This document shows positions 15,412 to 42,309 of a stretch of DNA of 64,000 nt, piece by piece. The first letter of the stretch is position 1. The number at the start of each line of letters is the position of its first letter. The notes under the pieces were generated by a model, which saw only the letters and a program-made list of their open reading frames with translations, did not search any database and was not told where the DNA came from. The position numbers and the translations under genes are program-made. The stretch is from Anaeramoeba ignava BMAN (Eukaryota > Protista > Anaeramoebae). The DNA lies in contig JAPDFW010000098.1 of the NCBI GenBank assembly GCA_028826165.1, forward strand, positions 113,173-177,172. The letters are read 5' to 3'.

Positions 15412-15576
15412 TTAATTCATTTCAAATTCCACTTTTTTTTTTATGATTTTGATTTTGATTTTGAAATAATTTTTTTAAATCATTTGAAAGTTTTTCTAAA
15501 TTTAAATAAGTTTTCATTTATAAAATAAAAATGAAAAAATGAAAAAATGAAAAATTCATTTTTTTTCTTTTTAAAA

Positions 15577-17331
15577 ATGAATGATTGTTTATTTTTTGGT
15601 TATAATTATTTTCCAATTCTTTTAATAAATAAACCATATAAAATAACAAAACCAATTCAATTTAAATTTGAAAATGAAAATGAAAATGAAAATGAAAATG
15701 AAAAACAAATTAAACAAATTTCATCAGGTTATTTTGGAACAATTTTCCTTTTTGAAAATGGAAAAGCAATAGAATATTTAAATGAAAATGATTCAAATCA
15801 AAATCCTGAAAAAATCCAAATTGAAAATATTCAAAAAATAACTGTTGGTGATCGAAGTGAATCTATTTTAACAAAAGAAGGAAATGTATTTGCCAAAGGA
15901 AGATATATTAATCCAAATAATTCAAAAGAATTTATCAATATTTCATTATTAATTGAAGATAAAAATGATAGAATAATTGAAGATATTGCTTCTGGAAGAT
16001 ATTCAATTTACTTATTAACTTTAAATCAAAATGCTTATGGAATTGGTTCAAATCAAGATGGTCAAATTGGTTTTGATTCTAAAACACTTTCAAAAACAGA
16101 AAAACCAATTTTAATGATGAAAAATGTTTCTAAAATATTTTCAGGAATTGCTTCAACTCATGTTTTTCTTTTAAATTCAAATCAAGAATTATTTGGATGT
16201 GGATTTAATCAATATAGTCAACTTGGATTAGGAGAATCAAGAGAAGAAAGAAAAATACAAAAATTAACCCAAATCCAAAATATTCCAAAAGGCAAAATAA
16301 TTGATATTCAATGTGGAGAATATCATTCAATAATGTTGATTGAAAATGAAGATGAAAATCAAAATCAAAATCAAAATCCAAAAAGAAAACTTTATTCATG
16401 TGGATCTTGGAAATATAATGGACTTGACCAAAATCAAAATACTTATGAATTTACTGAAATCGAATCACCTTTATTTGAAAATGATGAAGATATTCTTGAA
16501 ATTTCTGTTGGAAATTCTCATACTTTGATTTTAACATCTAATTCAAAATTAATTGGATTTGGATATAATAGATATGGTCAATTAGGAACTGGAAATACAG
16601 AAGAACAATTAATTCCAATTCAAATTGAACTTCCTAAATTAAGATTTAATGAAAATATTTCTAATTATCATATTTCTTGTGGAGTTTCTAAATCATTTCT
16701 TTATTATTCTCCTCTTTCTTTTTCAAATCTTGAAGAAGATTTGATAAAATTATTTGAAAGAAAAGAATTTTGTGATATTTCATTTAAAACAGAAAATGGA
16801 GAAATAATTGAAGCTCATAAATTAATATTAAAATATAGATTAAATCAAAATCAAAATGAAATTGAAAAACTTCAAGAAATTATTTCAAATAAATCAATTA
16901 AAGAATCAAATCAAATATTTGAAATGATTTATTCAAACAGAATAATAAATCCAAAATTATATTCTGAAATTAAAGAAATTATAAATTCCAATGAAAAAAT
17001 TGAAGAAACAATTAAAAGAATTTATTTAAATGAAAATGAAAAAGATTTTATAATTGAAAGAAAAGAAAAACAATATAAATTTCCTAAATTAATATTAATA
17101 ATGAGAAGTGAATTATATCGAGGAATGTTTTTATCTGTAATAAATGATACTTCTAATAAAGTTACAGATTATAGTGAATTAAGTAATAAATCATTTCAAT
17201 TATTAGAATATTGGATTTATTCAAATCAAATTAAAAATGGAATTCAAATTACACAAGAAATAATTGATGAAATTAAAATTGGAATTGATTATTTTCAATT
17301 AAATCAAAACAAAATCCAAAATTTATTTTGA
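15577..17331 (+). CDS. RCC1-repeat + BTB protein, paralog 1
   Basis: RCC1 motifs (G.N..GQLG, QCGEYHS, SVGNSHTL) followed by two BTB-like segments (FCDISFK...AHKLIL; KDFIIE...FPKLILIMRSELYRGMF). Intronless; last codons probably frameshifted. Confidence 0.92.
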   Translation: MNDCLFFGYNYFPILLINKPYKITKPIQFKFENENENENENEKQIKQISSGYFGTIFLFENGKAIEYLNENDSNQNPEKIQIENIQKITVGDRSESILTKEGNVFAKGRYINPNNSKEFINISLLIEDKNDRIIEDIASGRYSIYLLTLNQNAYGIGSNQDGQIGFDSKTLSKTEKPILMMKNVSKIFSGIASTHVFLLNSNQELFGCGFNQYSQLGLGESREERKIQKLTQIQNIPKGKIIDIQCGEYHSIMLIENEDENQNQNQNPKRKLYSCGSWKYNGLDQNQNTYEFTEIESPLFENDEDILEISVGNSHTLILTSNSKLIGFGYNRYGQLGTGNTEEQLIPIQIELPKLRFNENISNYHISCGVSKSFLYYSPLSFSNLEEDLIKLFERKEFCDISFKTENGEIIEAHKLILKYRLNQNQNEIEKLQEIISNKSIKESNQIFEMIYSNRIINPKLYSEIKEIINSNEKIEETIKRIYLNENEKDFIIERKEKQYKFPKLILIMRSELYRGMFLSVINDTSNKVTDYSELSNKSFQLLEYWIYSNQIKNGIQITQEIIDEIKIGIDYFQLNQNKIQNLF

Positions 17332-17494
17332 TTTATTCAAAATTAAAATTAAATTTAAAATTTCAAAATCAAAATTCAAAATTAAAATTAAATTTAAAAT
17401 TAAAATTAAAAATAAAAAAATTAAAATTAAAATTAAAATTAAAATTCCAAAAATTATTTTTAAAATTTTTCTTAAAATTTTAAAAAAAAATAAA

Positions 17495-19280
17495 ATGAAA
17501 TTTTTATTTTTCATTGCAGATTTCAAAAACCAAAATTTTTTCAAAAATAAACCAGAAAAAATAAGAAAGCCAATTCAATTTAAATTTGAAAATGAAAATG
17601 AAAATGAAAATAAAAATGAAAAACAAATTAAACAAATTTCATCAGGAAGTTATTCAATAATTTTCCTTTTTAAAAATGGAAAAGCAATAGAATATTTAAA
17701 AGAAAATGATTCAAAACAAAATCCTTCAAAAATCCAAATTGAAGAGAATATTCAAAAAGTAACTGTTGGTGATGATAATGTAGCTATTTTAACAAAAGAA
17801 GGAAATGTATTTGCCAAAGGAAAAGATATTAATCCAAATAATCCAGATCAATTTATCAATATTTCATTATTAATTGAAGATAAAAATGATAGAATAATTC
17901 AAGATATTGTTTCTGGAAGTAATTCAATTTATTTATTAACTTCAAATAAAAATGTTTATGGAATTGGTTCAAATCATTATGGTCAAATTGGTTTAGATTC
18001 TAAAACACTTAAAAAAACAGAAAAACCAATTTTAATGATGAAAAATGTTTCTAAAATATTTTCAGGAAATTCTTCATATCATGTTTTTCTTTTAAATTCA
18101 AATCAAGAATTATTTGGATGCGGATTTAATCAATATAGTCAAGTTGGATTAGGAAAATTAAAAGAAGAAAAAAAAATCCAAAAATTAACCAAAATACAAA
18201 ATATTCCAAAAGGCAAAATAATTGATATTCAATGTGGGTATAATTATTCAATAATGTTGATTGAAAATGAAAATCAAAATCAAAATCCAAAAAGAAAACT
18301 TTATTCATGTGGATCTTCTTATTATAATGGACTTGGCAAAAATGAAAATACTTATGAATTTACTGAAATCAAATCATCTTTATTTGAAAATGATGATAAT
18401 ATTATTGATTTTTCTGTTGGAAATGCTCATACTTTGATATTAACATCCAATTCAAAATTAATTGGATTTGGATGGAATGCTTGGGGTCAATTAGGAACTG
18501 GAGATACAACAGAATATCAATTTATTCCAATTCAAATTGAACTTCCTAAATTAAGATTTAATGAAAATATTTCTAATTATCATTTTTCTTGTGGAGTTTC
18601 TAAATCATTTCTTTATTATTCTCCTCTTTCTTTTTCCAATATTGAAGAAGATTTGATAAAATTATTTAGAAGAAAAGAATTTTGTGATATTTCATTTAAA
18701 ACCGAAAATGGAGAAATAATCTAAAGCTCATAAATTAATATTAAAATATAGATTAAATCAAAATCAAAATGAAATTGAAAAACTTCAAGAAATTATTTCA
18801 AAAAAATCAATTAAAGAATCAAATCAAATATTTGAAATGATTTATTCAAACAAAATAATAAATCCAAAATTATATTCTGAAATTAAAGAAATTATAAATT
18901 CAAATGAAAAAATTGAAGAAACAATGAAAAGAATTTATTTAATTGAAAATGAAAATGAAAAAGATTTTATAATTGAAAGAAAAGAAAAACAATATAAATT
19001 TCCAAAATTAATATTAATAATGAGAAGTGAATTATATCGAGGAATGTTTTTATCTGTAACAGAAGATACTTCTAATAAAGTTACAGATTATAGTGAATTA
19101 AGTAATAAATCATTTCAAATATTTGAATATTGGATTTATTCAAATCAAATTAAAGATGAAATTCAAATTACAAAAGAAATAATTGATGAAATTCAAATTG
19201 GAATTGATTATTTTCAATTAAATCAAACAAATCCAAATTTATTTGATTTATTAATTAAAAAATTTAATAATCAAAATTAA
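17495..19280 (+). CDS. RCC1-repeat + BTB protein, paralog 2 (aberrant 5' end, frameshift near 18721)
   Basis: ORFs 17495-18724 and 18837-19280 are colinear with the other paralogs; 'ataatctaaagctcat' has one extra base versus 'ataatcaaagctcat'. Confidence 0.85.
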
Positions 19281-19614: not shown

Positions 19615-22600
19615 TTAATCTTCTTTATTTAAATACCAAATCTCATTAATTTTTCTACCATTTGGATCAAATCCAAAATTTAAATTTAAATTTAAATTCA
19701 AATCTAAATTTAAATAATTATCACTCAAAACATAATAAATCTTTCGAAAACCTGAAATCAAATCCATTAAATTTGAATCACCTAATTCTTTTGCATCTGG
19801 TAAAATATCATTCAAACCATTTTTTACAATCAACATTGCAATTTCGATTGTTTGTGAAGTAATCCAATCTTTTTGCATATCAAGTAATCTGCTTATAATT
19901 GAAACAAATTTTTGATTTTTGGATTGAAAATTTTTGTTTGAAATTTCATTCAATGATTTGTTTTCAACAGAAGAAAGAAGAAAAAGAAGTTTTCGTTTTG
20001 CAATTGAATAACAATCCAAAATGTAGAATAAATCAAACACATTTAATGGTTCAATCGATAAAAATAGTTTCTCAACAAAACCATCAACTTGGAAATTAAA
20101 AAATGTCAAAACCCGAATTGATTTAAATTCAAAACTCTTCAAATCATAACTAAATTTGAAATTCAAGTTTTTTAAATCATTTGAATATTTTTCCACATAT
20201 TTCAATGTTGGTTGAGAAACAAAAGGAGAAAGTAATTTTGATTGAAACAAAGAAAACCGAATATGAAATAATCGAGGATCATGCTGTGGGAACTCTATCT
20301 TTGTAAATTCATGGAAAAAAGTAATACAAGGAAAGAGTGGCTTTGATCTTGATAAATGCGAACAAACAACTCCATAATATTTTCCATCAATAATAACCTC
20401 CATTGAATCGCGAGAAGCGTTATAGATTATAAAAATACTTGATCGTGGTTTGGAAAACTGAGGACAGAATGGAATTGTTTTATTATATACTATTGAATGG
20501 CCATCGTCTCTAATTCCACAAGAACCTTTCATCTCACCAACTATATTTGGAGTCTTATTTTTTCGTGAAATTCCAATTGCAATATTGTGAGTGAATTGAT
20601 GATTTTGTGTTATATTCATTTCCCAAATATGAATTCCTTTGTCGGGAAAAGGAAACATTGAGTATATTGTCAGAAAGTTTGATCCAATGCTTTTTGGAAT
20701 TATTACAGTGTTTTTTTTCGTAAATTGAACCATAAAATCCTCCATTTCAAACTCAAATATTGGATTAAACACTTGAATCCCTTCATTTGATCTTTGCCAA
20801 ATATCAAATGGAATTTTGTTATCTGCATACATTTCCATTTGGCTTTTGTATAAACTTCCAACTACTTGATTGATGATTTTTGTTCTTTTTGATTGAATGA
20901 ATTGAATTTTTGATTTTTGTGTTGAATAAACAAATTTTTGATTTGGAAAGGCAATCCTTGATGAAATTCCTTCTTTCGCCTTTTTCTTCATTATTACTTC
21001 TGGTTTTAAAATGTGTGTCTTTCTTTTTTCTTCTCTTAAATGATCGTAATCAAACTCAAAATGAATTTGTTTAAAATTCTCATCTTCATCTTTTCCAAAA
21101 AAATCTCCATCTTTCATTTGATAATATTTAGGTCCTTTATCAAATGAAGGTTCTGGTTTTTTAACTTGAGCTTGATCTTCATCTTGATCTTCATCCAATA
21201 AATTATATTTTTTTTGAGAAACTTGATTTTTTGTTGTTTTTGGTTTTTTTTTTGATTGAAAAAAACTTTTCCCAATTTTTGTTCCCAATCTTTTTGTTTT
21301 GAGAGATCTGGATGATTTGCGGAAAAAATTTGCAGATTTTGCTAAATCTTCACTTTTATCAATTAAAACTTCCAATTTTTCTTCTCTTGATAAAGATTTC
21401 TAAATTTTGTTTTGTTTTCATTTTCATTTTCAATTAAAAATTTTTTTTCAAAATGAATTAAAAATATACTTCTATATTTCGATGAATAGTTGATTTAGCT
21501 TCATTCACTCTTCGTTGTGTCTATTAAAAAAAAAATGGAACAAAAAGAAAAAAAAAATTTTTTTTTTGGGAATAAATTTAATATTCTTACTTTTTTTGTT
21601 GAATTATCTATTGATAATATTTGGTCTCTTTGTGCTGCGAGTTCATTTAAAACAGATCTTCCAATCTCCTCAGTTTGTTCAGATAGAAGATATGAATGTT
21701 GAAGTGATTCTTCTGTAATTGATAAAGAGATTGATTTCATTCTAAGAATAGATTCTAAAAAATGATAAAATTAAATGAATAAATAAATTTTTTTTTTTTG
21801 ATTTGTTTTCAAACCATTTATCTTATCTAATTCTGCATCTTGATCTCGAATTAGTTTGTTTTGAGCTTCTAAAATTTTTGAAATGTCTGAAGTTGAAGAT
21901 AATTTTTCAGGAAATGAAATTGGAGAATCTGAAACATTATTGAAATTTTTTTTGAAATTAGAAAGACTTGAATCAATTTGTTTCTTTTTTTGGAAAATTT
22001 TTTGTAACAAATTAACAGAATTTCTTGCTTCTAACAACAAATTTTGATAGTTATTTTTATCGAAAAACTTTGTGATTAAAATGGGAAGAAAATTGTGGAC
22101 ATTTTTAAATAAAGAATTTGGATGAAGTAAATTAAAACTGAGCAAAGTATTGTGATTGTAAACTTGCTGATTAAGTTGAAAGAAGCAATTATTTAAAAGG
22201 TGGAAAGATAATTCTGGGTTGAATAAAGGACCTGTAGCAAGAAATAGCATTGAATATGAATCGTTTTGTTGGAACAAAGAATATTCAGTGCATTTCATAA
22301 ATTTTTGGAATCCTGGTTTATTACTGGATGATTTAACTTCATTTTGAATTACAATATCTATTGCCCATTGGTGAGGGTCGTTTTGAGCTGGAAATTTAGC
22401 GAGAATAGTTCGATCAAAAGATCTTGCAATTGCGAAATATTTAAAAGTATTAAGATCCACAATTTTGCCATCATTTGTCAACATTTCTGTTCTTGTTACT
22501 GGATGAAATGCTACATTAAGTATGAATCCTGCGAATGTGATAATTGCGGAAATATTCATTAAAAGAAATATTGCGAATATTGATTTATTTAAACTTGATT

Positions 22601-23514
22601 CTTGGTCCATTTTTTGGTATTGCAATTTTGAGAGAAAAGAAATGGCAACAATTGAGAGAATTAGCATTGCAATGAATAAAACAATGTAGCCAATCAGATA
22701 CCATTTCGAGTCTAATATCATGATCTTTGTGCCGTTTTTTGTTCTGAAGTAAATTCTTGAGCGTAATTGTTCTCTTAAATTTATTCCACAAATGCGGACC
22801 TCTTTTTTCATCATTACAGAATAAAAAATTGTCAAATAAAACAAGCAAACAAGCGCATAACCAACACAAGCACCAATTGTTATTTTTAAATCCACAGCTA
22901 GAATGATATCCAGTGTATACCACAAACTGAATACAAAACACAAATTTGCATGATTGTGATAATGATGTATATTATAAAGAAAGTGTATCTTGTTTCTTTC
23001 TATTTATTTTCAATCCAAAATTTTTAATTTTTAATTTTTAATTTATTTTTTCAATTTAAATTTTTTGGATACTTTTTGAGAAAATTCAACAAATCTTTTG
23101 AAAATATTCTCCTTTTTTAAAATTATTTGTTTTGTTGGAGTTAAAACTAAAAAAGGTCCAAATCCCATTGTTATTGCTCCAAATAAAAAACAAGAACGAA
23201 GAAAAATATCTAATGTTTGATTTCCTGAGTAATCTTTTGCTAATTTAAAAGTTGTTCCTGAAAAATAATAAGCAAGTGTAATAAATCCAACTGCAAGACT
23301 AAAAGGAATTTTGATTTTATTTCAAAAAATTTCAATTTAAAAATTCAAAATATCAAATTAAATTTAAATTTAAAAAAATTCACCTTTTTGGTGATTTGTT
23401 ACTAAGTTTATAAATTTCTTCAATATATTTCTTTCCTGTTGCAAAAATCGTTGAAATTATAACTAAAGATGTTGAAACTGCTAAATTATTTTGAATAGAT
23501 TCTAAATGAATCAT
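19615..23514 (-). CDS. Chimeric protein: ~7 TM segments - longin - Qc-like/Qb-like SNARE segments - R-SNARE - SPRY - helical C-terminus
   Basis: ATG at 23514; introns 23299-23383, ~23000-23072, 21755-21814, 21521-21590 and 21400-21469; the last three are GT-AG and phase-consistent. Spliced text: AQNKLIRDQDAELDKINESILRMKSISLSITEESLQHSYLLSEQTEEIGRSVLNELAAQRDQILSIDNSTKKTQRRVNEAKSTIHRNIEKSLSREEKLEVLIDKSEDLAKSANFFRKSSRSLK. One 1-bp shift near 22940 is needed to join exons 1-2 to the rest. Confidence 0.78.
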
Positions 23515-23676: not shown

Positions 23677-25455
23677 ATGAATGATTGTTTATTTTTTGGA
23701 AGAAATCAAAATCCAATTCTTATCAAAAATGAACCAAATTCAATGAAAAACCCAATTCAATTTAAATTTGAAAATGAAAATGAAAATGAAAAACAAATTA
23801 AACAAATTTCATCAGGAAGTTTTTCAACAATTTTCCTTTTTGAAAATGGAAAAGCAATAGAATATTTAAATGAAAATGATTCAAATCAAAATCCTGAAAA
23901 AATCCAAATTGAAGAAAATATTCAAAAAGTAACTGTTGGTTATCAAAACGAAGCTATTTTAACAATAGAAGGAAATGTATTTGCCAAAGGAAAAGATATT
24001 AATCCAAATAATCTAAAAGAATTTATCAATATTTCATTATTAATTGAAGATAAAAATGATAGAATAATTCAAGATATTGTTTCTGGAAGATTTTCAATTT
24101 ACTTATTAACTTTAAATCAAAATGCTTATGGAATTGGTTCAAATGAATATGGTCAACTTGGTTTAGATTCTAAAACACTTCCAAAAACAGAAAAACCAAT
24201 TTTAATGATGAAAAATGTTTCTAAAATATTTTCAGGAAATTCTTCATATCATGTTTTTCTTTTAAATTCAAATCAAGAATTATTTGGATGTGGTGCTAAT
24301 AGAGATGGTCAACTTGGATTAGGAAAATCAAGAAAAAGAGAAACAGAAATCCAAAAATTAACCAAAATCCAAAATATTCCAAAAGGTAAAACAATTGATA
24401 TTCAATGTGGAGATTCTCATTCAATAATGTTGATTGAAAATCAAAATCAAAATCAAAATCCAAAAAGAAAACTTTATTCATGTGGATATTGGATATATAA
24501 TGGACTTGGCAAAAGATTTGGAGAAGATACTTATGAATTTACTGAAATCAAATCATCTTTATTTGAAAATGATGATATTATTCTTGAAATTTCTGTTGGA
24601 AATGCTCATAGTTTGATTTTAACTTCTAATTCAAAATTAATTGGATTTGGATATAATTCATATGGTCAATTAGGAATTGGAGATATATATTTTTTTCGAT
24701 TAATTCCAATTCAAATTGAACTTCCTAAATTAAGATTTAATGAAAATATTTTCAATTATCATATTTCTTGTGGAGATTACAAATCATTTCTTTATTATTC
24801 TCCTTTTTCTTTTTCCAATCTTGAAGAAGATTTGATAAAATTATTTAGAAGAAAAGAATTTTGCAATATTTCATTTAAAACCAAAAATGGAGAAATAATT
24901 GAAGCTCATAAATTAATATTGAAATATAGATTAAATCAAAATCAAAATGAAATTGAAAAACTTCAAGAAATTATTTCAAAAAAATCAATTAAAGAATCAA
25001 ATCAAATATTTGAAATGATTTATTCAAATAATTCCATAATAAATCTAAAATTATATTCTGAAATTAAAGAAATTATAAATTCTAATGAAAAAATTGAAGA
25101 AACAATTAAAAGAATTTATTTAAATGAAAATGAAAAAGATTTTATAATTGAAAGAAAAGAAAAAGAATATAAATTTCCTAAATTAATATTAATAATGAGA
25201 AGTGAATTATATCGAGGAATGTTTTTATCTGTAACAGAAGATAAATCTAATAAAGTTACAGATTATAGTGAATTAAGTGATAAATCATTCCAAATATTTG
25301 AATATTGGATTTATTCAAATCAAATTAAAGATGAAATTCAAATTACACAAGAAATAATTGATGAAATTCAAATTGGAATTGATTATTTTCAATTAAATCA
25401 AACAAATCCAAATTTATTTGATTTATTAATTAATAAATTTAATAATCAAAATTAA
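23677..25455 (+). CDS. RCC1-repeat + BTB protein, paralog 3 (intact, 592 aa)
   Basis: Complete intronless ORF colinear with the other paralogs. Confidence 0.95.
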   Translation: MNDCLFFGRNQNPILIKNEPNSMKNPIQFKFENENENEKQIKQISSGSFSTIFLFENGKAIEYLNENDSNQNPEKIQIEENIQKVTVGYQNEAILTIEGNVFAKGKDINPNNLKEFINISLLIEDKNDRIIQDIVSGRFSIYLLTLNQNAYGIGSNEYGQLGLDSKTLPKTEKPILMMKNVSKIFSGNSSYHVFLLNSNQELFGCGANRDGQLGLGKSRKRETEIQKLTKIQNIPKGKTIDIQCGDSHSIMLIENQNQNQNPKRKLYSCGYWIYNGLGKRFGEDTYEFTEIKSSLFENDDIILEISVGNAHSLILTSNSKLIGFGYNSYGQLGIGDIYFFRLIPIQIELPKLRFNENIFNYHISCGDYKSFLYYSPFSFSNLEEDLIKLFRRKEFCNISFKTKNGEIIEAHKLILKYRLNQNQNEIEKLQEIISKKSIKESNQIFEMIYSNNSIINLKLYSEIKEIINSNEKIEETIKRIYLNENEKDFIIERKEKEYKFPKLILIMRSELYRGMFLSVTEDKSNKVTDYSELSDKSFQIFEYWIYSNQIKDEIQITQEIIDEIQIGIDYFQLNQTNPNLFDLLINKFNNQN

Positions 25456-25680
25456 AATTAAAATTAAAATTAAAATTAAAATCAAAATCAAAATTAAAAT
25501 TAAAATTAAAATTAAAATCAAAATCAAAATTAAAATTAAAATTAAAATTAAAATTAAAATTAAAATTAAAATTAAAATTAAAATTAAAATTAAAATTAAA
25601 ATTAAAATCAAAATTAAAATTAAAATCAAAATTAAAATTAAAATCAAAATCAAAATTAAAATTAAAATTAAAATTAAAAT
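25456..25680. repeat. (AAAATY)n microsatellite between tandem paralogs
   Basis: Nearly pure aaaatt/aaaatc repeats. Confidence 0.95.
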
Positions 25681-25715
25681 TCCAAAATCATTTTTTCATT
25701 TTTTTCTTTTCAAAA

Positions 25716-27518
25716 ATGAATGAAATTATATTTTTTGGTGAAAATCAATATCCAATTCTTATCAAAAATGAACCAAAAAAAATAACAAAACCAATTCAAT
25801 TTAAATTTGAAAATGAAAATGAAAATGAAAATGAAAAACAAATTAAACAAATTTCAACAGGTTATTATTCAACAATTTTCCTTTTTGAAAATGGAAAAGC
25901 AATAGAATATTTAAATTATTCAAATCAAAATGTTGAAAAAATCCAAATTGAAGAAAATATTCAAAAAGTAACTGTTGGTTATTTTAACGAAGCTATTTTA
26001 ACAATAGAAGGAAATGTATTTGCCAAAGGAAAAGATATCAATCCAAATAATCCAAATGAATTTATCAATATTTCATCATTAATTGAAGATAAAAAAGATA
26101 GAATAATTCAAGATATTGTTTCTGGACACAGTTCAATTTACTTATTAACTTCAAATCAAAATGTTTATGGAATTGGTTCAAATGAAGTTGGTCAACTTGG
26201 TTTTGATTCTGAAACACTTAAAATATCACAAAAACCAATTTTAATAATGAAAAATGTTTCTAAAATATTTTCAGGAAATTCTTCAACTTGTGTTTTTCTT
26301 TTAAATTCAAATCAAGAATTATTTGGATGCGGATTAAATATATATAGTCAACTTGGATTAGGAGAATCAAGAGAAGAAACAAGAATTGAAAAATTAACCA
26401 AAATCCAAAATATTCCAAAAGGTAAAATAATTGATATTCAATGTGGAGATTCTCATTCAATAATGTTGATTCAAAATGAAGATGAAAATCAAAATCAAAA
26501 TACAAAAAGAAAACTTTATTCATGTGGAAATTATCAATATAATGGACTTGGCAAAAGATTTGGAGAAAATACTTATGAATTTACTGAAATCAAATCATCT
26601 TTATTTGAAAATGATGATGATAATATTCTTGATTTTTCTGTTGGAAATGCTCATACTTTGATTTTAACTTCTAATTCAAAATTAATTGGATTTGGACATA
26701 ATGATGATGGTCAATTAGGAACTGGAAATACATATTGGTATCAATTAATTCCAATTCAAATTGAACTTCCTAAATTAAGATTTAATGAAAATATTTCCAA
26801 TTATCATATTTCTTGTGGTGATGACAAATCATTTATTTATTATTCTCTTTCTTCTTTTTCCAATCTTGAAGAAGATTTGATAAAATTATTTAGAAGAAAA
26901 GAATTTTGCAATATTTCATTTAAAACCGAAAATGGAGAAATAATTGAAGCTCATAAATTAATATTAAAATATAGATTAAATCAAAATCAAAATCAAAATC
27001 AAATTGAAAAACTTCAAGAAATTATTTCAAATAAATCAATTAAAGAATCAAATCAAATATTTGAAATGATTTATTCAAACAATTCCAAAATAAATCCAAA
27101 ACTATATTTTGAAATTAAAGAAATTATAAATTTAAATGAAAAAATTGAAGAAACAATTAAAAGAATTTATTTAAATGAAAATGAAAAAGATTTTATAATT
27201 GAAAGAAAAGAAAAACAATATAAATTTCCAAAATTAATATTAATAATGAGAAGTGAATTATATCGAGGAATGTTTTTATCTGTAACTGAAGATAAATCTA
27301 ATAAAGTTACAGATTATAGTGAATTAAGTAATGAATCATTTCAAATATTAGAATATTGGATTTATTCAAATCAAATTAAAGATGAAATTCAAATTACACA
27401 AGAAATTATTGATGAAATTCAAATTGGAATTGATTATTTTCAATTAAATCAAACAAATCCAAATTTATTTGATTTATTAATTAAAAAATTTAATAATCAA
27501 AATCAAAATTTAAATTAA
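25716..27518 (+). CDS. RCC1-repeat + BTB protein, paralog 4 (intact, 600 aa)
   Basis: Complete intronless ORF colinear with the other paralogs. Confidence 0.95.
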   Translation: MNEIIFFGENQYPILIKNEPKKITKPIQFKFENENENENEKQIKQISTGYYSTIFLFENGKAIEYLNYSNQNVEKIQIEENIQKVTVGYFNEAILTIEGNVFAKGKDINPNNPNEFINISSLIEDKKDRIIQDIVSGHSSIYLLTSNQNVYGIGSNEVGQLGFDSETLKISQKPILIMKNVSKIFSGNSSTCVFLLNSNQELFGCGLNIYSQLGLGESREETRIEKLTKIQNIPKGKIIDIQCGDSHSIMLIQNEDENQNQNTKRKLYSCGNYQYNGLGKRFGENTYEFTEIKSSLFENDDDNILDFSVGNAHTLILTSNSKLIGFGHNDDGQLGTGNTYWYQLIPIQIELPKLRFNENISNYHISCGDDKSFIYYSLSSFSNLEEDLIKLFRRKEFCNISFKTENGEIIEAHKLILKYRLNQNQNQNQIEKLQEIISNKSIKESNQIFEMIYSNNSKINPKLYFEIKEIINLNEKIEETIKRIYLNENEKDFIIERKEKQYKFPKLILIMRSELYRGMFLSVTEDKSNKVTDYSELSNESFQILEYWIYSNQIKDEIQITQEIIDEIQIGIDYFQLNQTNPNLFDLLIKKFNNQNQNLN

Positions 27519-27728
27519 AATCAAAATTAAAATCAAAATCAAAATTAAAATTATAATTAAAATTAAAATTAAAAATTTAAATTCTTTTTCAACTCTTCAT
27601 TTTTAAATTGGATTTTCTTTTTTTCTTTTTTTTTTAACAATTTAAAAACCTTAAAAAAAAATAAACAAAAATCAAATCTTTTTTCTAAATTTGATTTTCT
27701 TGATTTGTTCATTTTTTTTTCTTTTGTT

Positions 27729-29181
27729 TTAACAACAATTAGATTTAGAATTAGAATTAGAATTAGAATTAGATTTAGAATTAGATTTAGATTTAGATTT
27801 AAATTTAGAAGATTTTGGATCACAAAGATTTAAAGGAATTTTATGGATTGCATTATCAAAATTTTGAACAATAACGTTAGTTAAAGAAGCACCAGATTCT
27901 TGAATTTTAATTTGATTTTTTGCAGAAATTGAAAAATAAGCTAAAAAATCATTTTTTTGAGCGTATTCTTGAAGATCTACAAGGACTTTGTTCTTTAAAT
28001 CGCATTTATTTCCTAGTAAAACTGCTGGTATTTTTTCTCCGTTTAATTGAGTTTTTTCATCTAATTCATTTTTCCAAAATTTAACATTTTCGAATGTTTT
28101 TCTTTTGTTAACATCGAAAACAACAAATGCTCCTGATGCTCCTCTATAAAATTGTGAAGTAACTGATCTAAAATTTGGATTACCTGCAATATCTACAATT
28201 TTAATTTTAATATTAATTTTAATTTTAATTTTGATTTTAATTTAATTTTAAATTATAATTTAAATTTGATTTTTAATTTTAATTTTAATTTTGATTTTAA
28301 TTTTAATTTTAATTTTAATTTAAATTTTGATTTTGATTTTAATTTTAATTTTAATTTGAATTTTAATTTTAATTTAAATTTTGATTTTGATTTTAATTTT
28401 AATTTTAATTTGAATTTTAATTTTAATATTGATTTTGATTTTAATTTTAATATTAATTTTAATATTAATTTTAAATTTTGATTTTAATTTTAATTATAAT
28501 TTTAATTTTAATTTTAATTTTAATTTTGATTTTAAATTAATTTTAATTTTAATTTTGATTTTAATTTTGATTTTAATTTTAATTTTAATTTTAATTTTTA
28601 ATTTTAATTTTAATTTGATTTTTAATTTTAATTTTAATTTTAATATTGATTTTTAATATTAATTTTGATTTTTAATTTTGATTTTAATTTTGATTTTAAT
28701 TTTTGATTTTAATTTTAAATTAATTTTTGATTTTTAATTTTAATTTTAATTTTGATTTTAATTTTAATATTAATTTTGATTTTAATTTTAAATTAATTTT
28801 GATTTTAAATTGATTTTGATTTTAAATTGAATGTTATTTTTATTTTGTGGAATTTTTGATCTTTTATTTAATTTGAGAAATTTTTAAATAGATCTCTTTT
28901 ATAAATTTATTCTTAAAACAATTAAAAAATAAAAATAAAAATTTCTTATTTTTTTTTTGACTTTTTTTTTTTTCTTAATAATATTTTAATTTCTAAAAAA
29001 AAATACCCCAATATTGAATTTGAATTGTATTTTCATTAATTTGTGTTGTTTTCATTCTAAAATCAACACCAATAGTATTTTTTTCATGAATATCAAATTT
29101 TTCTCCAGTTAATCTTTTTACAAAACTTGTTTTTCCAACTCCTGGATCTCCAATAACGATTACTTTATAAAGAAATTCCAT
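27729..29181 (-). CDS. Rab GTPase, Rab32/38/29-like, two exons
   Basis: GDPGVGKTS, TIGVDF, W|DIAGNPNF, FYRGASGAFVVFDV, WKNELDEK, LLGNKCDL, SAK, terminal CC. Intron 28193-29006 (phase 1). Confidence 0.88.
28193..28830. repeat. Intronic (TTTRAT)n microsatellite
   Basis: tttaat/tttgat repeats fill most of the Rab intron. Confidence 0.9.
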
Positions 29182-29361
29182 TTTAAAATTTTAAAATTAA
29201 AATTTTTTAATTAAAATTTTTTAATTAAAATTTTTTAATTAAAATTTTTGTTCTTCTTTTTATTTAAAAAAAAAAATTAAAAAAGAAAAAAAATGAAAAA
29301 AAAATATAAAATAAATTTATTTAAACAAAAAAAATAAATAAGAAATTTTTTTTCCCTTTTT

Positions 29362-31116
29362 TTAATTCGAAAAAATAGATAATAAATCAGAACTTAAAAA
29401 AGAAAAATACAATTTGGATTGAATCTCAAATGTTTGCATATCTTGATTGGGTTGATTTTGAATTAAAGGTTTAATTGAGGAATTTTTGAAATCAATCAAT
29501 TTTTTTTTTGGAAATTTAATTTTTTCAAAAATAGAATTTGAATCAATATCATAAATTTCTATTAAGTTTTTATTTTGTTCTGAAATGGCAACTAATCGAC
29601 GATTATTCTTTAAAAAGATATGAGAACTTAAAACTGTAGAATTTTGATCGAGTTTTTTCATCCAAATATTTGAATTTTGCTGATAATTTTCATTCAGATC
29701 AAAAACTTGGAGTTGAGTTGAATTTTGAAAGTGAATTGTAGTTAAAAAAAGAGAAGAATTGGGAAGTGCCTTTATATTTGAGCACTCACCAGTTAATGGA
29801 AGAAGAATATTTTCGAATTGAAGATCTGGCTTTTTTCTAGAAAACAATAAACCTAATTTTGTTCCGATTAAAATTCCTTGATTTTCTTCATTTTGTTCTT
29901 GATTTAAGGAAATGCAAGAAAGAGAATGAACCGGCGAATTAAACCCTGTATGAATTGTAGTTAAAGGTTTTGCGAGGTTTCTGGTATCGAAGAGACTCAC
30001 ATCTCCATTTTCTTTTCCGCAATAAAAAACTGTCGAATTTGGATCGAAACAACATGAAAAAATTTTTTCATCACTTTCAAATCCAAAAATTTGTTGATTT
30101 GATTTTGCGCTTGTTAATTTAATCCATTTGTCTTGGGAAACAGTAAGAACGAGTTCGTTTTTGCATTTTAAATCCTCAATTTTGCAACTGTGAAGAGGAA
30201 TAAAGCGAATACTTTCAAGATTTTCTTGATCAATTTGAACAATTCCAAAATTTTGAAATCGTTGTTGAGCCACAAAGAAGGAATTATTGTATGAACAAAA
30301 GTCATGGATATTGGAAGATAATATTGTGCGTGAATCGATAAAGTTGAAATTATTGAAAAACGCATATGGATTTTTAGTTGGAGATTTGAGGTCATGAATG
30401 CATAAAAAATTTCTCTGGAAATTTTGGCTTGGTTGTTGGCTGCTCCGAATATTCCAAGGAGAAGCTGTGCAGAGCATGTTTGTGTTGTTGTTATTTCCTG
30501 CAAAAGATATATTTGATTTTAAATTGTTTAATGGCTTCAATATCCATTTTGATGGAGAATTAAATTTTTGGAAAATTCCGTTATTTTTTTCAAATTTTTT
30601 ATTTTTTCTATAATTTTCTAAAAATGAATCCAATTCTTTTTCCTTGTTTTCCAAATTGAGTTTTTCTTTTGTCAATTTTTCAATATTATTTTCCAGCTCC
30701 TTAATTTTAAGATCAAGATCCTTTAATTCATTTTGGAAATCAAGTTTAATTTTCTGATTTTTTTGGAAAATATTTTTATCGAAAGAGAAAGTTTGATTTG
30801 GATAAATTTTCCAAATTTCTCTTTGATTTGCTCTTTTATTGCACATGGGACATTTTTTTCTTCTGCTTGGACATTTCTGGAGATATTCTTTAATACATTT
30901 TCTGCCAAAAGAATGCCCACAACTCAAAGAACATAGTTCATGTTCACCTTTCATTGTGCAAACTTGAGAACATAAAGAACAATAAAAAGCGTTTTTTTGT
31001 TTTTGAGTTTGTGATAATGTTTGTTTATCAATTTCAATAACATTTTGATTTGAATCTTCAATAAGATCTTGGTCCATTTCTTTTTTACGTTTTTTATTAT
31101 TTTTTTTTGATTTCAT
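29362..31116 (-). CDS. RFWD3: RING finger - coiled coil - WD40 E3 ligase, RFWD3-like
   Basis: CSLC...GEHELCSLSCGHSFGRKCI...KCPMCNKRA...IWKIY fits the RFWD3 RING signature; followed by a coiled coil and WD40 (IPLH..KIEDL, SCCFD, VSLFDTR). Confidence 0.85.
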   Translation of the reverse strand: MKSKKNNKKRKKEMDQDLIEDSNQNVIEIDKQTLSQTQKQKNAFYCSLCSQVCTMKGEHELCSLSCGHSFGRKCIKEYLQKCPSRRKKCPMCNKRANQREIWKIYPNQTFSFDKNIFQKNQKIKLDFQNELKDLDLKIKELENNIEKLTKEKLNLENKEKELDSFLENYRKNKKFEKNNGIFQKFNSPSKWILKPLNNLKSNISFAGNNNNTNMLCTASPWNIRSSQQPSQNFQRNFLCIHDLKSPTKNPYAFFNNFNFIDSRTILSSNIHDFCSYNNSFFVAQQRFQNFGIVQIDQENLESIRFIPLHSCKIEDLKCKNELVLTVSQDKWIKLTSAKSNQQIFGFESDEKIFSCCFDPNSTVFYCGKENGDVSLFDTRNLAKPLTTIHTGFNSPVHSLSCISLNQEQNEENQGILIGTKLGLLFSRKKPDLQFENILLPLTGECSNIKALPNSSLFLTTIHFQNSTQLQVFDLNENYQQNSNIWMKKLDQNSTVLSSHIFLKNNRRLVAISEQNKNLIEIYDIDSNSIFEKIKFPKKKLIDFKNSSIKPLIQNQPNQDMQTFEIQSKLYFSFLSSDLLSIFSN

Positions 31117-40407: not shown

Positions 40408-40520
40408 TTTTGAAAAGAAAAAAAATGAAAAAAATGAAAAAAATAAAAAAAAGAACAAAAAAATTTTTTTTCATTTTTCATTTTATTTTTCAATTTAATT
40501 TTAATTTTAATTTTTAAAAA

Positions 40521-42309
40521 ATGAGTTTTAAAGATTTTGAACAAACAAATCAACAAGAACAAAATCAACAATCACAAACAGATATAATTTACAATCAAAT
40601 TTTTACTAATTTAGAAAAAATTGGGAAGAATAATAAAACACTTGATGAATTTGTTAAGAAAATTGGGACACCAAAAGATACAGAAACACATCGTTCAAGA
40701 ATTATGCAACTTTCACAACAAACAGCAGATATTATTAAACAAACATCAAAGATGATCAAACAAGCATCTTCTCAATCAAATCAAAAAGTAAAAAATTTAT
40801 TTCAATTAAATTTATTTCAATTAAATTTATTTCAATTAAATTTATTTCATTTAAATTTATTTCAATTAAATTTATTTCATTTAAATTTATTTCATTTAAA
40901 TTTATTCAATTAAATTTATTTCATTTAAATTTATTCAATTAAATTTATTCATTTAAATTTATTTTAATTAAATTTATTTTAATTAAATTTATTTCAATTA
41001 AATTTATTTTAATTAAATTTATTTCATTTAAATTTATTTAAATTAAATTTATTTCATTTAAATTTATTTCAATTAAATTTATTTCAATTAAATTTATTTC
41101 AATTAAATTTATTTCTATTAAATTTATTTCAATTAAATTTATTTCATTTAAATTTATTTCATTTAAATTTATTTCAATTAAATTTATTTCAATTAAATTT
41201 ATTTCTATTAAATTTATTTCAATTAAATTTATTTCAATTAAATTTATTTTAATTAAATTTATTTCAATTAAATTTATTTCAATTAAATTTATTTCAATTA
41301 AATTTATTTCTATTAAATTTATTTCAATTAAATTTATTTCAATTAAATTTATTTCTATTAAATTTATTTCAATTAAATTTATTTCAATTAAATTTATTTC
41401 ATTTAAATTTATTTTAATTAAATTTATTTCAATTAAATTTATTAAATTAAATTTATTCAATTAAATTTATTTCATTAAATTTATTTCTATTAAATTTATT
41501 TCATTTAAATTTATTCAATTAAATTTATTTCCAATTAAATTTATTTCAATTAAATTTATTTCAATTAAATTAAAATTTAGGATGATTTTCGTTTAGAAAA
41601 AATTATGAAAGATTTTCAATTAATTTTCGAAACATTTAAAAAAGTTGAAAAAAATTCTAAACTTGCACAAATGAAATATGAACCAAAACAAAATTCTCAA
41701 CAAAAACCAAAAAACATATTTAAGTAAAATTTATCAATTCTTTGCAAGTTTCCAACAAAAAAAGAAAAAGAAAAAGAAAAAAACGTTTTCTTTGAATTCA
41801 AAATCAAAATCAAAATCAAAATTAAAATTAAAATTAAAATCAAAATTAAAAATTAAAATTAAAATTCATTTATAAAATTAAAATCAAAATTCATTTATAA
41901 AATTAAAATCAAAATTAGTGATAATGTAGAAGAAGATGAAACTTCAAAATTAATAAATGATCAAAGAAGAGAAGAATTAAGACAACAACAAATGTTCACT
42001 GAAGAAGTACAATTTCATAATGAAATTATCAAAGAAAGAGATGAACAAATCCAAGAAATTGAACAAACAATTAATGAAGTAAATGAAATGTTTATGGATT
42101 TAGCAAAAACAGTTCAAGTTCAAGGAATCCAAATCATAACAATTGATGAAAACATTGATAAAACTGAAATGAATACAGAAGAAGCCGTTGAGGAATTGCA
42201 TAAAGCAAGTAGATTTCAACAAGCTGCTCGTAAAAAATCTTGTTGGTTACTTTGTTGCATTGTTGTTGCTGCAATTATTATTGCTGTTGTTTTGGGTGTT
42301 AAGCTTTAA
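40521..42309 (+). CDS. Endosomal Qa-SNARE, syntaxin-7/12 (Pep12/SYP2)-like
   Basis: KIGTPKDTETHR Habc motif; IIKERDEQIQEIEQTINEVNEMFMDLAKTVQVQGIQIITIDENI SNARE motif; C-terminal TM. Introns 40788-41580 and 41724-41918 are phase-consistent. Confidence 0.92.
40795..41570. repeat. Intronic 15-bp tandem repeat (TTTCAATTAAATTTA)n
   Basis: About 50 copies fill syntaxin intron 1. Confidence 0.95.

Follow-up and report, generated by a model that had tools for sequence, protein, structure and literature searches.

The gene described here lies at positions 19615–23514 of a 64,000-nucleotide window from the protist Anaeramoeba ignava BMAN (contig JAPDFW010000098.1, positions 113,173–177,172). Coordinates refer to this window, the whole stretch of DNA that was analysed, and all features of the gene are on the minus strand. 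The gene is real, and its product is identical to GenBank entry KAJ5070166.1 (P0026), a 1176-residue A. ignava protein with a six-exon model. The predicted chain contains a seven-transmembrane (7TM) domain, a longin domain, a cassette of Qc-like, Qb-like and R-SNARE pieces, a SPRY domain and a C-terminal helical bundle. In the wider 7TM-longin-linker-SPRY-CAP-like family to which it belongs, other cargos can take the place of the SNARE pieces. An earlier note, drawn from the DNA letters, had proposed the order 7TM, longin, Qc-like, Qb-like, R-SNARE and SPRY; this order is kept in the 1176-residue model, and a folded domain behind the SPRY, which the note overlooked, is added.

Exon 1 (23514–23384) starts with an ATG at 23514, encodes the first transmembrane helix (TM1) and aligns with the N-termini of the paralogs. 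It is separated by intron 1 (23383–23299; 85 nucleotides (nt), GT-AG, 12% GC) from exon 2 (23298–23073), which encodes TM2-TM3 and a conserved GPF-x-V-L-x-PT motif. Homology favours acceptor 23000 for intron 2 (23072–23000), and GenBank uses acceptor 22989; in the GenBank-identical model, exon 3 spans 22988–21815. The remaining exons, exon 4 (21754–21591), the 51-nt exon 5 (21520–21470) and exon 6 (21399–19615), are delimited by three GT-AG introns with a GC content of 12–14%. Intron 3 (21814–21755; 60 nt) interrupts the Qc-like piece, intron 4 (21590–21521; 70 nt) lies near the Qb/R boundary, and intron 5 (21469–21400; 70 nt) follows exon 5, which encodes the N-terminal half of the R motif. 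Once joined with the 51-nt exon, the coding segments form one open frame. When all GT/AG pairs of 40–150 nt across the stretch of introns 3–5 were combined into open-frame models, this model ranked first of 36, with the best SNARE hidden Markov model (HMM) score and the lowest intron GC content. The three phase-consistent introns of 60–70 nt and the short exon of the earlier note are thereby confirmed, and they match the GenBank protein. Separate genes were considered and rejected on the grounds of the single open frame and of homologs that are single chains in transcript-derived sets.

The reading frame is discrepant at two homopolymers. A T-run at 22935–22938 breaks the homologous frame in TM4, through either an assembly error or a real lesion. 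Upstream of this run, the paralogs match a different frame, and P0001, a protein derived from transcripts, reads through the run in frame; both support acceptor 23000. The GenBank model sidesteps the break, which the earlier note had missed, through acceptor 22989 and thereby acquires a poorly fitting 17-residue stretch. At the second site, an A7 run (21985–21991), P0001 leaves the frame and stops just after the longin. Since both discrepancies fall in homopolymers and the assembly is a polished Nanopore one (PMC11550330), the simplest account would be a single error per data set. A search with the last exon found no transcript-derived protein, but this search was blind to proteins of more than 1040 residues. 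The single chain from the 7TM domain to the C-terminus is predicted from the genomic sequence, and full-length expression of this copy is unproven.

Anchor, longin and C-terminal domains

The AlphaFold2 (AF2) model of paralog P0002, which is 49% identical and has a mean predicted local distance difference test (pLDDT) score of 83, forms seven long helices and, behind them, a longin topology. The corresponding 7TM domain of the A. ignava gene (22497–23514) has short outer loops and basic inner loops, and its putative N-out/C-in orientation is read from the basic loops. For the 7TM part of the two-domain P0002 model, no PDB structure scores above a Z of 8.2 and the fold searches retrieved no 7TM structure; it also matches no Pfam family. 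A resemblance to GPR137/TOM1 was indicated by an Atlas lead (0.85–0.89), but HHalign against partial TOM1-like exons of the same genome gave 0.2%. A GPR137/TOM1 or GPCR-type identity has no support from the partial exons, the Pfam scan or the PDB searches with the two-domain model.

The longin domain (22011–22451) is assigned to the VAMP7/Sec22 type on the basis of a profile search and of the paralog's fold. In a profile search of the PDB, the four best matches are all VAMP7 longins. The longin of the P0002 model, which is 42% identical in this domain, superimposes on VAMP7 with a VIA Z score of 16.9 and a root-mean-square deviation (rmsd) of 1.8 over 125 residues. Its Z scores against Sec22 and Ykt6 are 16.4 and 12.8, respectively, and non-SNARE longins score below VAMP7 and Sec22; Foldseek (E 1e-4) agrees with the VAMP7-type match. 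The longin proposed in the earlier note is thus upheld by the PDB profile matches and the fold of the paralog, although the Pfam scan of the sequence gave no longin match.

The SPRY domain matches Pfam PF00622 above the cut-off (28.6 bits, E 1.6e-6) at 20284–20631, close to the span of about 20310–20720 given previously. It is followed by a helical bundle (19696–20274) in the AF2 model, in which the C-terminal 190 residues have a pLDDT of 86. The bundle resembles the N-terminal helical folded domain of CAP/Srv2, with VIA Z scores of 13.5 and 13.3 against 8.8 for the next match. The superposition has an rmsd of 3.1 over 153 residues, and a Z score of 13.5 is near the noise level for helical bundles. 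Foldseek retrieved several CAP entries with probabilities up to 0.96 at an E-value of 0.3, and sequence searches gave no CAP signal. Homology to the CAP/Srv2 helical domain is likely on these models but unproven.

The SNARE cassette

The cassette between the longin and SPRY domains contains one complete SNARE motif and two partial ones. Their layer-0 residues were placed with position-specific scoring matrix (PSSM) profiles built from the SNAREs of the same genome. The R motif (21301–21602; residues 562–615) is complete and VAMP7-like, with R587 at layer 0 and no transmembrane segment behind it. It matches Pfam Synaptobrevin above the cut-off (48.5 bits), as well as Nyv1 (E 7e-7) and VAMP7 (E 5e-6), and its two halves have PSSM z scores of 5.3 and 11.3. 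All 16 layers are plausible, the layer-0 arginine is retained, and the motif is 38–39% identical to three VAMP7-type motifs of its own genome. The Vti1-like Qb motif (21591–21707) covers layers -7 to about +3 with Q552 at layer 0 (21630–21632); it scores 24.6 bits against Pfam V-SNARE_C, just below the cut-off, and has a PSSM z score of 8.8. The Qc-like piece (21693–21851) is an N-terminal half motif with H530 at layer 0 (21696–21698). Its PSSM z score against the two Qc SNAREs of the genome is 5.9, a value reached by none of 1000 shuffles, and it is absent from the results of the PDB search and pairwise BLAST. The Qc call, which the PSSM alone supports, is the weakest of the three. One of the two genomic Qc SNAREs, which is otherwise canonical, also has a histidine in place of glutamine at layer 0.

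The three motifs overlap, because the layer-0 residues H530, Q552 and R587 are spaced by only 22 and 35 residues relative to a motif length of ~53 residues. The residues of Qb layers +3 to +8 double as R layers -7 to -2. On this alignment, one helix face can be read as Qb or as R but never as both, and only R is complete; the shared residues mean that Qb and R cannot engage together. The earlier description of motifs that abut without linkers was therefore inaccurate, and the term 'poly-SNARE' is an overstatement for one complete R motif, a partial Qb motif that shares layers with R and a weak Qc half. The claim that no intramolecular bundle can form is upheld. P0026 contains no hydrophobic segment after residue 280 and hence no tail anchor behind the SNARE pieces, as also claimed. 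In sum, the HMM scans that the note had proposed recovered Synaptobrevin and SPRY, left V-SNARE_C marginally short and returned no longin.

Variable cargo in a 7TM-longin family

A search with exon 3 identified 25 proteins from A. ignava, A. flamelloides, Diphylleia, Mantamonas, Rigifila, metagenomes and the choanoflagellate Hartaetosiga, the last of which shares the 7TM domain alone and not the longin. Five family loci are present in A. ignava. From the N-terminus, members share a 7TM domain, a longin, a linker of variable content, one or two SPRY domains and a helical domain. With the patterns used, no relatives were found in viral and prokaryotic contigs. Two near-identical A. ignava loci (L008 and L009) contain two SPRY domains each and show frame changes in low-complexity runs, which are probably assembly errors.

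The linker holds different pieces in different members. In A. flamelloides P0003, it contains an R motif and a full Qa motif (E 4e-10 to syntaxin 1A); in Diphylleia P0011, it contains a C-A motif, an R motif and polyproline. The linkers of P0002 and P0039 contain WH2, polyproline, C-A and an isolated Ras switch-I peptide. P0002 is the sister paralog encoded elsewhere in the A. ignava genome (L007, contig C61) and is a candidate transmembrane Arp2/3 activator. C-A recurs in Anaeramoeba, Diphylleia, Rigifila and one unidentified eukaryote. The choanoflagellate protein, which has no longin, contains a SAM domain and a Qc-like piece, for which 21 of 22 weak PDB matches are Qc SNAREs (best E 0.03). 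A residual N-terminal half of the R motif directly behind the longin scores in two relatives only.

An exchange is also observed in Mantamonas, where two isoforms of one Trinity gene have 404 N-terminal and 379 C-terminal residues in common. The slot between them holds half an R motif in one isoform and a permuted Ras in the other. The Ras motifs are in the order G3-G4-G5-G1-G2, as in cpRAS, and this domain context is new for cpRAS. The swap of cpRAS against the half R-SNARE, seen when P0041 of Mantamonas plastica is compared with P0040 and P0017, could reflect alternative splicing or assembly chimeras, and P0017 also has another version of the C-terminal domain. By-eye reading of metagenomic members revealed small-GTPase-like sequence in the linkers of two (L046:1442-2110 and L037:5112-6284), with additional polyproline and a C-A-like motif in L037. 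In three further sequences (L044:5597-7842, L045:6001-9437 and P0023), the same 7TM domain precedes a disordered linker that leads to two SAM-like domains, a kinase-like domain, or SAM.

In the core tree, the A. ignava gene is sister to P0002 (96/94), and P0003 is sister to the actin/Ras-cargo copies of A. flamelloides (100/99). Because each SNARE-cargo copy groups with non-SNARE copies, the two SNARE-cargo copies of Anaeramoeba are, barring gene conversion, non-orthologous on this tree. The R-motif tree does not separate a single capture from repeated capture. The branch of the A. ignava gene is long (0.82) relative to that of P0002 (0.25). Three A. flamelloides paralogs are 85–89% identical in the core and 26–36% identical in the linker. 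The exchangeability of the cargo shifts the question from one chimera to the purpose of a cassette slot.

The protein lacks a defining feature of each of several known systems that it resembles. With the longin R-SNAREs, conventionally divided into the VAMP7, Sec22 and Ykt6 families, it has in common the R-SNARE-type longin fold, as seen in the P0002 model, and a following R motif with a layer-0 arginine. Unlike them, it has an N-terminal 7TM domain, ~115 residues with Qc/Qb pieces between the longin and R motif, and a SPRY and helical domain after the R motif instead of a tail anchor or CAAX, and its sister paralogs have no R motif. Tomosyn and amisyn also have an R motif without a following anchor, an arrangement expected to be non-fusogenic, but the A. 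ignava protein is an integral membrane protein with an internal R motif, and no WD40 propellers or PH domain were found in it. SNAP-25 proteins likewise contain more than one Q motif per chain. Their two motifs are complete, in the order Qb then Qc, and separated by a long linker, whereas here Qc precedes Qb without a linker and the motifs are truncated and overlapping. The polyproline, WH2 and C-A of the paralogs recall the WASP/WAVE/WASH factors, but the C-A of the paralogs is internal and the present copy has no actin-nucleating motifs. The likeness to CAP/Srv2 is one of structure only; there is no CARP domain, and the chain ends after the bundle. Integrated decoys and bait regions are known from plant NLR-IDs, the NLRP1/CARD8 tripwires and alpha-2-macroglobulin. 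These and the cpRAS proteins (PMC2430557) are alike in a variable slot with pieces of host proteins, including the permuted Ras of one relative, but the family has no NB-ARC, FIIND, thioester or VWA domain and fails the definition of NLR-type receptors. In its action, the protein may nonetheless resemble tomosyn or an integrated decoy.

What is apparently new as a category is the architecture together with its exchangeable slot; the individual modules and the two working principles all have precedents. The family in Anaeramoeba and the three CRuMs protists (Diphylleia, Mantamonas and Rigifila) is apparently undescribed, in line with the novelty claimed earlier. The open literature yielded no description of a 7TM-longin-SNARE architecture, and neither SNAREs nor longins nor SPRY are mentioned in the main text of the Anaeramoeba genome paper (PMC11550330). 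A longin/R-type family anchored by seven helices in Metamonada and CRuMs, with its 7TM domain also in a choanoflagellate, would represent old trafficking machinery lost from model organisms.

A proposed SNARE trap and its alternatives

The favoured reading, to which a probability of about 0.45 is assigned, is a membrane-anchored SNARE trap that does not itself drive fusion and belongs to a family of actin/trafficking scaffolds. The protein would be a polytopic scaffold with a cytosolic C-terminus, in which a longin R-SNARE of the VAMP7/Sec22 kind gave rise to the cytosolic part, with an exchangeable cassette between longin and SPRY. The longin would direct the protein to the membrane of an endosome or phagosome or fold back onto the cassette. 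The intact R motif would replace VAMP7 in zippering with a Qa/Qb/Qc acceptor complex. With its anchor on the N-terminal side and ~560 soluble residues behind it, the R motif cannot pull two membranes together and would trap or delay fusion as tomosyn does; such a role is plausible by analogy. Alternatively, the same helix could act as Qb or half-Qc and nucleate unproductive complexes, these readings being mutually exclusive. Together with the polyproline/WH2/C-A and Ras pieces of the sister paralogs, this would allow the family to couple fusion control and actin assembly on one compartment of bacteria-eating protists.

The trap is favoured by a longin closest to those of R-SNAREs and by the completeness of the R motif. 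The longin, SNARE pieces, C-A, WH2, polyproline and CAP-like domain are all trafficking or actin modules, and the low copy number of five loci is as for a housekeeping regulator. Regulators of phagosome maturation are reported to be expanded in Anaeramoeba (PMC11550330). No finding links the protein specifically to phagolysosomal fusion, the process named in the earlier note. If it is a clamp or scaffold, it would be a candidate for how Anaeramoeba keeps bacteria in stalled phagosome-like compartments, and its paralogs would be candidate transmembrane Arp2/3 activators. Several observations weigh against the trap. The P0001 stop and the TM4 frame break leave the full-length chain of this copy unproven. 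It is difficult to see how half motifs, overlapping motifs or a lone Ras switch-I peptide of 8 residues would serve as functional modules. Moreover, the non-orthologous SNARE copies of the two Anaeramoeba species carry different Q motifs, and the genome already encodes a tomosyn-like gene with a terminal R motif (L019:1486-3000, minus strand).

A possible but less probable alternative is that the linker is a panel of baits. It would display pieces of host hubs attacked by bacterial effectors, namely SNARE motifs, Ras switch I and Arp2/3 activators, and their cleavage or modification would free or activate the terminal domain, or gate the 7TM domain, and start a defence response. The terminal domain would be the SPRY and helical bundle here and SAM or kinase-like domains in relatives. 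The gene would then be the SNARE-bait member of an ancient protist 7TM sensor family that arose independently of NLRs. This alternative accommodates the different cargos of the paralogs and of the two Mantamonas isoforms, although the latter are possibly assembly chimeras. It also accommodates the A. flamelloides linkers that diverge behind a conserved core, although low-complexity linkers evolve fast regardless. Alpha-2-macroglobulin-like proteins possess bait regions. One such protein in Dictyostelium contains an inserted Ras permuted to G3-G4-G5-G1-G2 (PMC2430557), a precedent for cpRAS in this setting. The isolated switch-I peptide covers the sites at which RRSP cuts (Y32/D33) and the residue modified by TcsL (T35) in Ras (PMC4468845). 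The choanoflagellate relative, in which the 7TM domain is combined with a Qc-like piece and SAM in the absence of a longin, and the by-eye SAM-like or kinase-like ends of other relatives point the same way. Against the bait panel, Pfam and fold searches found no executioner domain, NB-ARC or NACHT, the loci number only five, and polyproline and C-A are chiefly host-binding motifs. If true, it would mean integrated-decoy immunity in unicellular eukaryotes, and the cargos would list the targets of their bacterial enemies.

An unlikely explanation is that the gene is a decaying duplicate, either a pseudogene or the source of a 7TM and longin product only, with the SNARE pieces as relics. The frame break in the assembly, the P0001 stop, the long branch and the lack of a last-exon match in the size-limited transcript search are all compatible with decay. 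However, more than 1000 codons are open in a genome of ~80% AT, and the SNARE layers, SPRY and C-terminal fold are intact. The two discrepancies also occur in different data sets, both at homopolymers and one in a polished Nanopore assembly, and P0001 shows that exon 3 is transcribed. A fusogenic single-chain multi-SNARE providing Qb, Qc and R together, which would draw on three classes in one chain and a missing Qa encoded in the genome, is largely refuted by the layer-0 spacings, the shared Qb/R residues and the missing C-terminal anchor and is very improbable. A small remainder of the probability falls to other roles.

The syntaxin that the earlier note had placed at 40521–42309 is a real, tail-anchored Qa gene on the plus strand (about 40520–42306) with a long repetitive intron. 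It lies 19 kb away, and this closeness does not indicate that the two proteins are partners. Among A. ignava sequences, this syntaxin is the best match (38%) to the Qa motif in the linker of A. flamelloides P0003. The gene itself lies within a tandem array of RCC1-repeat/BTB-like paralogs (15547–19280 and 23677–31116, read by eye), of which the copy at 17495–19280 is divided into two open reading frames.

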